Assembly: GCF_006345805.1 (NCBI RefSeq)
Contig: NC_043007.1
Coordinates: 68,820,001-68,884,000, forward strand
Direction: 5' to 3'
Source: Octopus sinensis
Taxonomy: Eukaryota
DNA: 64,000 bases
Shown here: piece after piece, positions 12,601-50,345 of the stretch
Layout: each line of letters opens with the position of its first letter
Position numbering within the stretch: position 1 is the first letter of the stretch
The notes under the pieces: model-generated
Seen by the model: only the letters and a program-made list of their open reading frames with translations
What the model was told of the DNA's origin: nothing
The model's database searches: none
Made by a program: the position numbers and the translations under genes

Positions 12601-12756
12601 GTATATATATATATATATATATATATATTATATATATATATATATATATATAATATATATATATATATACAATAACAATTGCAGCGTGGAAGGTGTTTAT
12701 AAGCCATTTAAGAAACACACAAAAGCCGTTCGATTCACTCCAACATTTAAGTTTAA

Positions 12757-12806
12757 TTTGTCAAAATATTTTCGTCGCTAAAATCCGCGACCTGTTCACT
12801 GACAAA
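12757..12806 (-). ncRNA. Mirror copy of the G3-C8 hammerhead motif
   Basis: Exact reverse complement of 12841-12890 in the left arm of the palindrome. Confidence 0.7.
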
Positions 12807-12840
12807 GTCCGTGCTGCATCTAACTAGATGCAGCACGGAC

Positions 12841-12890
12841 TTTGTCAGTGAACAGGTCGCGGATTTTAGCGACGAAAATATTTTGACAAA
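12841..12890 (+). ncRNA. Minimal type I hammerhead ribozyme motif, G3-C8 core variant
   Basis: Stem I TTTGTCA/TGACAAA (7 bp); core GTGAACA (12848-12854); one extra G; stem II GTCGC/GCGAC with loop GGATTTTA; GAA; palindromic stem III AATATT; predicted cleavage after UUU at 12883. Confidence 0.7.
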
Positions 12891-13063
12891 TTAAACTTAA
12901 ATGTTGGAGTGAATCGAACGGCTTTTGTGTGTTTCTTAAATGGCTTATAAACACCTTCCACGCTGCAATTGTTTTCGTTTCAGCACACGATCTCAGATCA
13001 AATTACTTGCTATGCGAGTACATCTCCGTAACATATATATATATATATATATATATATATATA

Positions 13064-13469
13064 GGCGTAGGAGTGGCTGTGTAGTAAGTAGCTTGCTCAC
13101 AAACCACATGGTTCCGGGTTCAGTTCCACTGCGTGGCACCTTGGGCAAGTGTCTTCTACTATAGCCTCGGGCCGACCAAAGCCTTGTGAGTGGATTTAGT
13201 AGACGGAAACTGAAAGAAGCCCGTTGTATATATGTATATATATATGTATGTGTATGTGTTTGTGTGTCTGTGTTTGTCCCCCCAATATCACTTGAAAACC
13301 GACGGGGATGTGTTTACGTCCCCGTAACTTAGCGGTTCGGCAAAAGACACCGATAGAGTAAGTACTAGGCTTACAAGGAATAAGTCCTGCGGTCGATTTG
13401 CTCGACTAAAGGCGGTGCTCCAGCATGGACACAGTCAAATGACTGAAACAAGTAAAAGAGCAAAAGAGT
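13064..13469 (+). mobile_element. tRNA-derived bipartite SINE (family C) with internal microsatellite
   Basis: GGCGTAGGAGTGGCTGTGTAGTAAG head, GGTTCAGTTCC B-box, internal (TA/TG)n, 3' CCAGCATGG..GAAACAAGTAAAAGAG. Confidence 0.85.
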
Positions 13470-15673
13470 AAGATATATATATATATATATATATATATAT
13501 ATACAGAGAGGGGGAGAGAGAGAGGGGTGAAAGAAAAGGAAGAGTGGAGAAACATACAGTAACTACTTTCCAAAAGAGAAAAGATGGTGCATTCGCTGTA
13601 GAATACACATCCGTACAGAAACAGGAACCGGGTTCGATCCTATGTATAGGAAGTAAGTAAGGTGACTTTATTTTTCATCATTCTCCAAATACTTCGAGCA
13701 TTCATATCGACTGAACTCTCCCTTCTCCCAAAGTAAGAAGAGATTTTTGCCTAGCTCTGAGCTCCAAATTATAATAATCGGTAGAGTTGCAAACTAATAT
13801 ACCGTGGATAGTTTTCTTTTATGGTAATTTAAAGTGACATCAGTAGAATTCTTTTCATTCAATCCAGGGTTAATACGTTTAGTACCAGTAATATAGTAGA
13901 ATCGATCCAGTTACCTACGCATTTCTTCTGTAAAGGATTAGCATTGATATATTCTATAGATACAAAAATCAATATATATACAATTCTTATTTCTCTTTTA
14001 CTTTTTTTAAATGTAAAATTTAAAATCTTTTAAATACCCTAAATAGCCACAAGAGCAAATAAAAAGATCGACCGGCTAAAGCATACCACCTACTTAAATT
14101 CTATTGCGAACCCCTAAAAGATTCCATTACCCAAAACATTGAATACTGGCCTATTCTATACCAGCCTGCTAAGAAGAGACACACCAAACTATTTACACCA
14201 GCTTACAAATTCTGCATACATGAATAAAAATCAATAGCATAACCTCAAATTTAATCAATAAATTTCCTTTAAAAGATCTCTCCGAAAAAACCTACCCTAA
14301 AACCTCATTACCACTTTACTCAAACCCACATACCCAAAGGGACCGATAGAATAAGTACTAGGCTTACAAAGAATAAGTCCTGGGGTAGATTTCTTCGACT
14401 AAAAACCCATTAAGGCGGTGATCCAGCATGGCCGCAGTCAAATGCCTGAAACAAGTAAAAGAATAAAAGAATATACGTTGTGTGTATGTGTGTGTGTCTG
14501 TATACATGTGTGTGTGTGTGTGTGTGTGTGTGTGTAAGTGGCTGTTTCCGATGTGAATCAACATATATTTGCTGCTTTCGTATTTGAAACAGTCGTTGCT
14601 GTGTTGCTGCTGCCATTGATACGCCTGCTTATATTTCCAATACTAATCACTGATATATATTTTTTCTTTCTTAATATCCTGTATACAATAAATGAAATCC
14701 TGTATTAAGACATAGCATCCAATTACATCAATGAAACGATATTTCGCTTAGTAAGTTTAAATATCATTATTAATGTGTAATATTACACAATCATTTTCCT
14801 TTATTCATTAATATATCACGTTGAAACCCTAACTTTGTTTGAGCTTCAGAACTATAATGAACTTATTTAAACAATTATAAATTTCATCAAATGCTAATAT
14901 TTCATTTTAAGTTGTTTGCCGTTGCGATAAAGAAGCAAAGACTATAAAGACAAACAGAACATATTGAATATTTCATTACCTATTGAAAAGTATTGGAGGA
15001 GAAAGGAACAATATGGGAGGATTAAATGGATAGTGGAATTCAGTTACAAGATGTAACGTTCTAATTTCAAATCAGCCTATGAGGCATTACAATTTTTTCC
15101 TGATTCAATAAAATATGTAGGCGTAATATAGCCTACATAATCTGATCACAATCCCTCTACGTTCCTTAATTTTTACACTTCATGCAATGTCATATGAAAA
15201 TTCTCATCTTATAACCAATGTTAGAAATCAACACTTATTTAAGTATCTCTGCAATTTATGTTCAAGTCACTCCGAATCAGAATTTGCAGTTTATCAATGC
15301 AGGATCAAATTATTATCAATGTCGACTGATTCATCTACTCCGTAATTTCTCTGAAAATTTGTCCTTTTCTGTCAAATTTAGGATTCCATATATGCATTTA
15401 TTATTATGTCGATATTATAGTCTAAATTCATATATTGTTTGCTGTTTTATTTTAAGGATCAGGGTAGGAGAAAGTAGTTGTTCCTATGAATTTCATTGGG
15501 GCCTTCGATTCGGGATCAGTGAGATCGTTGAAGTTAATATGTCTCTGTCTGTAATGCAGTAATTGGTTACATAACTCAGTAGATACTTTCCTGGTTCATA
15601 TACAAATATCAATGTGTTAATTTGGGAGAGGAGAAGTTGCTTTCCTTAGTAGGGCTCCAATTGTATAACATAC

Positions 15674-48176: not shown

Positions 48177-48554
48177 TAATATATAGATATATATATATAT
48201 ATATATATTATATATATATATATATATATATATATAATATATATATATATATATATATATATATATATATATATATATATTATATATATATATATATATA
48301 TATATATTATATATATGGCGATAACTATTATATATATATTATATATGGCGATAACTATTAGTATGGCGATAACTATTATATATATATATATATATATATA
48401 TATATATAATAGTTATCGCCATACTAATATGCCATTTATATAAAATAAAAGCTGTCCGCTTATTAGCTCCATGAGGCCATCGCCTTAAGTTAGCTATTTG
48501 ATACACAAACTGTATCCATATAACCTTCGAACAAGGGAGGTCAGTCGCTCCACA

Positions 48555-48626
48555 CTACTTGACCGACAGCTACAGACGCGTTTCGGGGTATTGCCCCTTT
48601 TCAATGTAGCGTAGTCAGACCAGTAG
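48555..48626 (-). ncRNA. Type I hammerhead motif, U3-A8 core variant
   Basis: Minus strand: GCTACA TTGAAAA GGGG-CAATA-CCCC GAAAC GC GTC TGTAGC (48569-48610). Stem I extends via TGAC/GTCA and CTACT/AGTAG; stem III palindrome ACGCGT. Confidence 0.7.
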
Positions 48627-49714
48627 GTGTCGCTTCCGACAATCTCTGTTCGAAGGTTTTATTTACCTAGTTTCGGTGGAATACATCCACTTGTTTTCAA
48701 TAATAGAAATATTAAAATTACTAAGTCTCTCTAAAAGAGAACACGGCAGCGTTCCCGGAAAATAATAGTTATCGCCATACTAATATGGCATTCTTATAAA
48801 AATAAGAATAAAGCTGTCCGCTTATTAGCTACATGAAAAGGGGCAATACCCAGAGTTCAGCCATGGGCTCCTAAGGCGCATCTTCGTTCGAATGCTGCCT
48901 CTGTTTTGTTTTGTCCTGTCAACGGAATTCCTGTTTTTTCCTGAGAGAAAGCCGCAATATGGTACCCTTATTAAACAGAATTTGGAAATTGCGGCCTTCG
49001 AAACATGGTAGAAGTAATAAAAGGTATTCTGTACAATCTTCGTTCAACTCCATTTATTCCATTTACTAATAATATATATATATATAATATATATGGCGAT
49101 AACTATTATATTATATATTAAATGGCGATTAACTATTAGTATGGCGATAACTATTATATATATATATATATATATTATATATATATATATATATATAGTT
49201 ATCGCCATAATAATATGCCATTCTTATAAAAATAAGAATAAAGCTGTCCGCTTATTAGCTCCATGAGGCCATCGCCTTAAGTAGCTATTGATACACAAAG
49301 TATCCATATAACCTTCGAACAAGGGAGGTCAGTCGCTCCACACTACTTGACCGACAGCTACAGACGGTTCGGGTATTGCCCCTTTTCAATGTAGCGTAGT
49401 CAGACCACCAGTAGGTGTCGCTTCCGACAATCTCTGTTCGAAGGTTTTATTTACCTAGTTTCGGTGGAATACATCCACTTGTTTTCAATAATAGAAATAT
49501 TAAAATTACTAAGTCTCTCTAAAAGAGAACACGGCAGCGTTCCCGGAAAATAATAGTTATCGCCATACTAATATGGCATTCTTATAAAAATAAGAATAAA
49601 GCTGTCCGCTTATTAGCTACATGAAAAGGGGCAATACCCAGAGTTCAGCCATGGGCTCCTAAGGCGCATCTTCGTTCGAATGCTGTGCCTCTGTTTTGTT
49701 TTGTCCTGTCAACG

Positions 49715-49825
49715 GAATTCCTGTTTTTTTCCTGAAGAGAAAGCCGCAATATGGTACCCTTATTTAAACAGAATTTGGAAATTTGCGGCCTTCGAAACAT
49801 GTGTAGAATGTAATAAAAGGTATTC
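49715..49825 (+). ncRNA. Type I hammerhead motif, canonical core
   Basis: TTC CTGAAGA (49732-49738); stem II GAAAGCCGCAA/TTGCGGCCTTC (10 of 11 pairs); GAAAC-ATGT-GTA then GAA; stem I extended by TTTT/AAAA and GAATTCC/GGTATTC; predicted cleavage after 49805. Confidence 0.65.
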
Positions 49826-49939
49826 TGTACAATCTTCGTTAACTCCATTTATTCCATTTACTAATAATATAATATATATATATATATAATAATATATATA
49901 TATATATATATATATATATATATATATATATATAATTAC

Positions 49940-50345
49940 AATAATAATCCTTGGATGGAATTTATAAATAATCTAATGGATCGCTACGCGCGTTTCCACA
50001 AATCACATGATTCTTATTCCTGTATTCCTGGGATGATTACAGCGCAGTCCGTAGTATCCATGAACATCGGGTAGATCATATTCATGTACTCACTTCTTCA
50101 GGCGAAATAGCATTAATGGATGTTTAACTGAGGGTTGTTTACCACTTTTGACAAATGAGAAGTTTGAGTGGGGGATGTGGTCATTTCTGTGTGTATTTGG
50201 GGATGGGATGGGATGGGTGGAAGGAAATAGAAAGAGAGGAATGAACAGTAGTTATAAGGAGATTGAGGTGTGTGTGGTGATGTGGGATATATTTTGCTAT
50301 TTGAGTATGCAGCTGTCGGGGTGGATAGTTTGGTTCTTTTGCTTG
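49940..50345 (-). mobile_element. 3' end of a second Penelope-like element
   Basis: Composition and layout like 34100-34560, with a hammerhead motif at the same relative position. Confidence 0.45.
49981..50105 (-). ncRNA. Type I hammerhead motif with ~100-nt stem II region
   Basis: Minus strand: TCGC CTGAAGA A GTGAG TACATGA ... TCATGTG ATTTGTG GAAAC GCGC GTA GCGA. The base of stem II is mostly G-U wobble pairs and lacks G10.1-C11.1. Confidence 0.55.

Follow-up and report, generated by a model that had tools for sequence, protein, structure and literature searches.

Hammerhead-type motifs with Watson-Crick-compatible 3-8 pairs in putative Penelope-like or retrozyme-type insertions of an Octopus sinensis locus

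Can the hammerhead ribozyme (HHR) exchange the bases of its tertiary 3-8 pair in nature, and in what kind of genetic element might it do so? The question is raised by a 64,000-nucleotide stretch of the Octopus sinensis genome (GCF_006345805.1, contig NC_043007.1, positions 68,820,001 to 68,884,000 of the forward strand), hereafter the window, in which an earlier note had described type I hammerhead folds with palindromic helix III in several unrelated repeat units. These were said to form a natural covariation series of C-G, G-C and U-A at the 3-8 pair and to belong to families of Penelope-like elements (PLEs) or retrozyme-like repeats with compensated cores. The window, eukaryotic and AT-rich (64% A+T), is crowded with microsatellites and transposon remnants. 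We consider it probable, at roughly 70%, that it holds at least five unrelated short non-coding insertions of PLE or non-LTR retrozyme type (retrozymes lacking long terminal repeats, LTRs), which carry type I HHRs, are mobilised in trans and have cores compensated at positions 3 and 8.

All five core heptamers on which the description rested lie where it had placed them. A string check located CTGAAGA at 30096-30102(+), 49732-49738(+) and 50101-50095(-), GTGAACA at 12848-12854(+) and TTGAAAA at 48604-48598(-), and both non-canonical cores do change positions 3 and 8 together with pairing kept (U3/A8 at 48604(-), G3/C8 at 12848(+)). In total there are six HHR-like loci, in the elements that we call A, B1, B2, C and D and at 63910(-) (E), and the 3-8 pair is Watson-Crick-compatible in all of them. 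The core residues U4 G5 A6, A9 and G12 A13 A14, the pair A15.1-U16.1 and a residue 17 other than G are present at 30096(+), 48604(-), 12848(+) with its mirror 12799(-), 49732(+), 50101(-) and 63910(-), while the C3/G8 of the CUGANGA box is absent at 48604(-) (U3/A8) and 12848(+) (G3/C8) and present at the other four loci. G10.1-C11.1 is found in A, B1, B2 and C, an extra nucleotide only in C (possibly also in D), and the helix topology, with helix I open and helix II closed beside A9 and G12, is followed by A, B1 and C, the last with a 1-nt bulge. The short helix III is self-complementary at every locus, reading ACGUGCGU in A, ACGCGU in B1, AAUAUU in C, ACAUGUGU in B2, ACGCGCGU in D and AGUACU in E. 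Cofolding of two copies of A, B1, B2 or E joined them through an intermolecular helix III and left helix II intact, at an energy below that of two separate monomers; for two copies of C no intermolecular helix III was predicted. These motifs are genuine HHR-type folds with palindromic helix III, far beyond chance. The claim of a type I fold at every site listed at the outset holds strictly at 30096, 48604(-) and 12848 and fairly at 49732, and gives way at 50095-50101(-), where helix II is not clean.

The comparison with chance was made with two descriptors. The strict one called for 5 bp or more in helix I, Watson-Crick pairing of positions 3 and 8, 4 bp or more in a helix II closed by G10.1-C11.1 (with or without a 1-nt bulge), a self-complementary helix III and N17 other than G. 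It found three independent loci in the window, 30096(+) with C3-G8, 48604(-) with U3-A8 and 12848(+) plus its mirror 12799(-) with G3-C8, versus one match in 1500 dinucleotide-preserving shuffles; since it was tuned after the sites had been seen, the true odds are somewhat less extreme, but still small. The relaxed descriptor took no account of helix II and accepted every base combination at 3 and 8. It returned seven matches at six loci, all with a Watson-Crick 3-8 pair, and in 300 shuffles 170 of the 240 chance matches had a 3-8 combination that was not Watson-Crick. Canonical C-G matches under this descriptor are expected at 0.007 per window versus three observed. A U-A match of the relaxed scan at 4907(+) was judged to be a chance match and set aside.

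Standard models see little of this set. A search of the whole window at Rfam gathering scores (RF00163, clan CL00010) gave no match, and in E-value mode the best 150 matches were all low-complexity, microRNA-like sequences. Hammerhead_1 reached 21.4 bits at 30090-30187 (E=0.019 in 741 nt) against a gathering score of 34, and at E<=10 no hammerhead match was returned in the regions of the U-A (B) and G-C (C) cores. In permissive mode five of the six HHR-like loci were missed. The expectation that standard searches would pass over the variant cores is thereby borne out.

Element A, with the canonical C3-G8 pair, follows an (AT)n array at 29745-29827 (Tandem Repeats Finder, TRF) and consists of two plus-strand tandem copies recognised by self-BLAST, the first of 546 bp (29828-30373) and the second (30414-30957) running directly into (TA)n at 30955-31007. 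A 40-nt tail stands between the copies (30374-30413, +) and is absent after copy 2. The type I HHR of copy 1 (30090-30187, +), supported by the descriptor, by Rfam Hammerhead_1 and by the dimer cofold, is composed of helix I UCUACG/CGUAGA (30090-95/30182-87), core CUGAAGA (30096-30102), a G-C-closed helix II of 67 nt (30103-69), GAA (30170-72), helix III ACGUGCGU (30173-80) and C17 (30181). In copy 2 the motif (30672-30770, +) has the core CUGAGAG, in which the A is shifted by 1 nt, and is otherwise identical; its C17 at 30764 lies 583 nt from the copy-1 site. Between the copies there are 21 indel events and 3 substitutions. On its other side, the (AT)n array preceding element A directly meets the end of a near-perfect palindrome of ~670 bp (96%; 29072-29744), built from a repeat that recurs at 42742-42985. 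The descriptors found no HHR in this palindrome, which was rejected as a further carrier because a GAAA box in register is lacking, and the 10-mer AGTGAACAGG that it has in common with the core region of element C may be a chance match.

The U3-A8 pair belongs to region B (48294-49913), a duplicated mosaic with a unit of ~783 bp that lies within long (TA)n. The array to its left (48179-48408, TRF) holds short fragments of the 3' end of B, TATGGCGATAACTATTAT, in both orientations; such fragments occur inside (TA)n at 48320-48430 and 49092-49215, as if by repeated, extremely 5'-truncated insertions. Element B1 copy 1 (48406-48761, -; self-BLAST) ends in a 3' tail of ~75 nt (48474-48406) that abuts (TA)n, and copy 2 follows ~783 bp downstream. 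Its minimal type I HHR (48569-48610, -; descriptor, monomer and dimer folds) comprises helix I GCUACA/UGUAGC (48610-05/48574-69), core UUGAAAA (48604-48598), helix II GGGG/CCCC (48597-85) with the loop CAAUA, GAA (48584-82), helix III ACGCGU (48581-76) and C17 (48575), so that the sequence at 48610-48569(-) departs from a minimal type I HHR only in the bases that occupy positions 3 and 8. The variant core UUGAAAA is present in both tandem B1 copies, in the second at 49389-49383; there the motif (49357-49395, -) reads CCCGAACCGUC in place of CCCCGAAACGCGUC through 1-nt deletions. Furthermore, the 5' half of the B1 HHR (GCUACA-UGAAAAGGGGCAAUACCC) is found in the opposite orientation at 48828-48851(+), joined to the inverted 75-nt tail, and again at 49616-49639. 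This mosaic head-to-head junction has 3 nt of microhomology, GCU, and its core is short of one U.

The same 75-nt terminal segment is common to B1 and B2, and B2 carries a canonical core. In B2 copy 2 (49729-49808, +; sequence and folds) the core at 49732-38 is followed by a 12-bp helix II with one A.C mismatch, GAA (49794-96), helix III ACAUGUGU (49797-49804) and A17 (49805). Helix I is weak, with 3 contiguous pairs only, and we grade the motif as a fair canonical HHR. In B2 copy 1 (~48938-49016, +) the core reads CUGAGAG. Across region B, 18 gap events and not a single substitution separate one copy from the other.

The G3-C8 pair is found in element C, which is bounded on the left by (TA)n at 12602-12669 (TRF and sequence) and followed by a second (TA)n at 13036-13063. 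Element C (12669-12978, self-BLAST) is a head-to-head palindrome whose arms (12669-12822 and 12825-12978) are 99% identical, differing only by two substitutions at the outer edge and by no indels; a tail of ~57-62 nt (12979-13035, +) on the right side only extends up to the right-hand (TA)n. The HHR-like motif at 12841-12890(+) was found by the descriptor, and its monomer minimum-free-energy fold contains helices I and II. It is made up of helix I UUUGUCA/UGACAAA (12841-47/12884-90), core GUGAACA (12848-54), an extra G (12855), helix II GUCGC-GGAUUUUA-GCGAC (12856-60/12869-73), GAA (12874-76), helix III AAUAUU (12877-82) and U17 (12883), with a predicted cut at 12883|12884. An identical mirror motif (12757-12806, -; core 12799-12793) was recognised by the same descriptor in the other arm. 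SINE (short interspersed element)-like sequences stand beside the microsatellites that hold C (13064-13230) and B (48100-48166), and we take them to be of a kind that occurs in octopus genomes. ARAGORN found no tRNA gene or tRNA-like promoter module in the window.

Element D and motif E complete the set. An (AT)n array (49867-49934, TRF) lies between B copy 2 and D, a single element whose predicted cut is ~50 nt from the array. Its motif (49981-50105, -; folds and descriptor) has a helix I of 4+4 bp (50105-02/49984-81), core CUGAAGA (50101-50095), GAA (49996-94), the perfect palindrome ACGCGCGU as helix III (49993-86) and A17 (49985). The helix II region of 98 nt is closed only via an A.G mismatch and four G.U pairs and is missing from the minimum-free-energy fold, and D is HHR-like, not a clean HHR. 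Motif E (63871-63915, -; relaxed descriptor and folds) lies outside the range covered by the earlier note and reads UGAAC, CUGAAGA, a helix II formed by U.U plus UGCA-UGCA, GAA, AGUACU, A17 and GUUCA, with a helix I of 5 bp; natural HHRs with a U10.1-U11.1 mismatch have been described (PMC3088659).

What kind of element carries these motifs? Each carrier lies within or beside a (TA)n microsatellite, and the copies are arranged as partial tandems (A with ~1.9 copies of 586 bp, B with ~1.9 copies of 783 bp), as head-to-head inversions (C and the B1/B2 junction) or singly (D). Tails of 40-62 nt on one side only are seen in A and C, and in every carrier a distance of 40-190 nt separates the predicted cleavage site from the element end that touches the microsatellite, the HHR motif likewise lying 40-190 nt from the 3' end. 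PLE insertions are known for a bias to (TA)n microsatellites, partial tandems (pseudo-LTRs), an adjacent inverted copy and a tail at one end, and among their non-autonomous derivatives 3' ends are held in common (Craig et al. 2021, PMC8557442); the carriers here are alike in the (TA)n target, the partial tandem, the inverted copy and the one-end tail, and B1 and B2 share their 75-nt tail. In PLEs, HHRs occur on opposite strands, 100-700 bp apart, singly or in tandem (Cervera & de la Pena 2014, PMC4209133). The minimal HHRs described there resemble the motifs of the window in being of type I, in a short palindromic helix III that implies dimers, in the G10.1-C11.1 closing pair and, in a large subset, in U3-A8. 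Tandem type I HHR repeats of animals have been named non-LTR retrozymes, with monomers of ~150-450 bp in 2 to >60 copies (Cervera & de la Pena 2020, PMC7229834), and a recent preprint argues for their origin from the terminal repeats of PLEs (Li et al. 2026, bioRxiv 10.64898/2026.07.22.740005). Like our carriers, they are non-coding, AT-rich tandem repeats with a type I HHR in which helix III has a stem of 1-2 bp capped by a palindromic loop, and release and circularisation of unit-length RNA are predicted for them. Seen against these published systems, the PLE/retrozyme reading of the carriers is well supported by their architecture.

The likeness is not complete. The (TA)n bias reported in PMC8557442 is that of Naiads, which lack canonical HHRs, whereas the carriers here have HHRs; the tails here measure 40 and ~60 nt as compared with the published 30-40 bp, and assignment to a clade is impossible without an ORF (open reading frame). 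Unlike the PLEs of PMC4209133, the units here, of 0.2-0.8 kb, have no reverse transcriptase (RT) or GIY-YIG ORF between the repeats. Helix I (6-7 bp) and helix II (4-5 bp) of B1 and C are nearer to those of classical metazoan HHRs than to the schistosome minimal HHRs, whose helix II has 7-8 bp (PMC4209133). In comparison with retrozymes, there are ~1.9 copies of 586 or 783 bp plus inverted and single copies, and circular RNA is here a prediction.

Judged by what is known of PLEs and retrozymes, the most likely mechanism is that the elements are inserted by a PLE reverse transcriptase and GIY-YIG endonuclease acting in trans with a preference for (TA)n. In transcripts that span more than one unit, the ribozymes of two copies would pair via helix III to form a double hammerhead, and each would then cut after N17 and release a unit-length RNA of ~583 nt (A) or ~783 nt (B) that may become circular. 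With U-A or G-C in the core, the active fold would keep its tertiary 3-8 pair, and these cores would thus be compensated rather than dead. U17 instead of C17 beside G3 would avoid Watson-Crick mispairing of G3 with C17, a situation comparable to the C3-G17 trap described for variants with G17 (PMC3884650).

How new would compensated cores be? Natural U3-A8 covariation was reported in 2011, and HHRs covarying at 3-8 were active in vitro (Perreault et al. 2011, PMC3088659); in the HHRs of PLEs, U3-A8 has ~1300 matches in Schistosoma mansoni (Cervera & de la Pena 2014, PMC4209133). The U3-A8 half of the finding is therefore already known, and the novelty implied by a covariation series in the window, on which the earlier note was titled, reduces to a G3-C8 candidate at a single palindromic locus. 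G3-C8 has been mentioned as a laboratory variant (PMC3884650) and is not named in the text of PMC4209133. As in the variants of Perreault et al. and of PMC3884650, positions 3 and 8 change together here and stay Watson-Crick; unlike these, the G3-C8 core of the window is genomic and has U17. A full-text literature search, which was incomplete, found no natural G3-C8 core, and because of that incompleteness G3-C8 as an unreported state is not established.

The series itself has to be read in the same spirit. All three states are indeed present in the window, but they lie in unrelated repeat families and form a between-family series, not phylogenetic covariation within one alignment. The further proposal of families with compensated cores fared less well, as U-A is found only in two adjacent tandem copies and G-C only in the two arms of one palindrome, and no further copies were retrieved. 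Exact-pattern scans for other copies of the variant families, made in metagenome and prokaryotic genome collections, gave nothing relevant; one 18-nt pattern (17 specified bases) had 66 unrelated chance matches, none of them followed by GAAA. The idea of compensated cores is nevertheless plausible on the sequence. It is possible, although rather doubtful, that the G3-C8 motif of C stands for a working ribozyme of a multi-copy family, which would be the first natural HHR with an inverted 3-8 pair and a co-adapted U17, beside U3-A8 and C3-G8 families on the same machinery.

Several points weigh against the view that the carriers are trans-mobilised insertions with compensated HHRs. No PLE RT or GIY-YIG endonuclease ORF was found in the 0.2-0.8 kb units, which contain short ORFs only, or among ten other ORFs of the window that were scanned, in which only mariner and Pif1 domains were seen; the elements are accordingly at best non-autonomous passengers, and the PLE-like or retrozyme-like nature proposed earlier stands on the (TA)n target, the tandem and inverted copies, the one-sided tail, the HHR near the 3' end and the occurrence of HHRs on opposite strands a few hundred bp from each other, all of which match published PLEs. 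Ten ORFs overlapping the elements had no exact counterpart in the protein collection, and a homologue search with a 60-aa frame across element C gave no candidate. Cleavage, transcription and circular RNA of the elements rest on prediction, and the minimal HHRs of PLEs cleave poorly in vitro even as dimers (PMC4209133). Units of 583-783 nt in about two copies are larger and fewer than in typical metazoan retrozyme arrays (150-450 bp). Rfam backs only site A, below its gathering score, and a single insertion event is the source of G3-C8, a single tandem pair that of U3-A8. For C in particular, transcripts spanning both arms would fold into the perfect hairpin of 150 bp in preference to the HHR, and in the cofolding AAUAUU was too weak a helix III to give the predicted dimer, so that any activity belongs to the source copy and not to this insertion. 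Finally, the many 1-nt indels around A and B leave bulges, the broken second copies, the bulge of C and the helix II closure of D uncertain at the single-base level.

This last point bears on the quality of the sequence, and it would be tempting to blame noisy long reads for the variant cores, for the palindrome or for the tandem arrangement. Young duplicates in the window (A, B and the pair 42999-44673/44651-46324) differ nearly only by 1-nt indels, with 21 and 18 gap events in A and B as compared with 3 and 0 substitutions, whereas old repeats differ mainly by substitutions. This pattern suggests residual long-read assembly error, and the broken second copies (CUGAGAG in A copy 2 and B2 copy 1, CCCGAACCGUC in B1 copy 2) are probably artefacts of it; moreover, assemblies are known to go astray at complex PLE insertions (PMC8557442). 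As an account of the variant cores, however, such error is very improbable, because these are substitutions, which are near-absent between young copies, and two independent readings exist of each, from the two B1 copies and from the two C arms, so that indel noise does not explain them. The palindromes are also short and lie in unique flanks, unlike fold-back artefacts at contig ends. Equally hard to credit is a chance resemblance, without ribozyme ancestry, in AT-rich sequence full of repeats and hairpins, where a string like UUGAAAA...GAAA may come to stand beside short inverted repeats. With thresholds set as low as 4 bp for helix I and 3 bp for helix II, about 0.1 U-A-core matches per window are expected by chance, the match at 4907(+) looks like one, and the variants are unrecognised by Rfam. 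Yet the single strict match in 1500 shuffles has to be set against three loci, and the shared (TA)n flanks, the PLE-type junctions and the position near the 3' end are not encoded in the descriptor and thus weigh against chance.

A different objection grants the ribozyme ancestry and sees in the U-A and G-C cores mutations private to dead copies of families whose consensus is CUGANGA, with no cleavage and with compensation by luck. Each variant does come from a single insertion event with no other copies retrieved, the second copies of A, B1 and B2 look broken, and the HHRs of PLEs are extremely variable within genomes (PMC4209133). However, luck would have had to supply two pair-restoring substitutions, twice independently, with the other core positions and the three helices intact, and none of the six HHR-like loci has a 3-8 combination that is not Watson-Crick. 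Furthermore, C arms that are 99% identical and a B tandem that is free of substitutions point to young insertions from a source that was already variant, and the breaks in the second copies are 1-nt indels of the type that dominates all young duplicates here, suggesting assembly error. We therefore regard private mutation as unlikely and prefer insertions whose cores were compensated before they arrived.

If the G-C core were a family trait and active, it would be a third natural state of the only tertiary base pair in the hammerhead active site that covaries, would complete a natural isosteric series at this catalytic pair and would support in vivo the view that the 3-8 pair serves structure alone. 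Descriptors with a fixed CUGANGA and the Rfam models undercount hammerheads in invertebrate genomes, and the window offers a compact example of PLE-type insertion of short non-coding passengers. The gain is incremental, given that the U-A part and the link between PLEs and hammerheads are already published.

The window also contains remnants of other mobile elements and further duplications. A mariner transposase remnant (PF01359) lies at 58730-59215(+), with best relatives in other organisms that are only 62-67% identical; the locus of one of these (41% G+C) has nothing else in common with the window. A fragment of a Pif1 2B-domain, Helitron-like, is found at 60198-60665(-). The pair 42999-44673/44651-46324 is a tandem duplication of 1.65 kb (98.8%), a unit of 166 bp is repeated in tandem, in 3.1 copies, at 60934-61443, and an inverted repeat of ~790 bp with 86% identity lies at 61657-62446.

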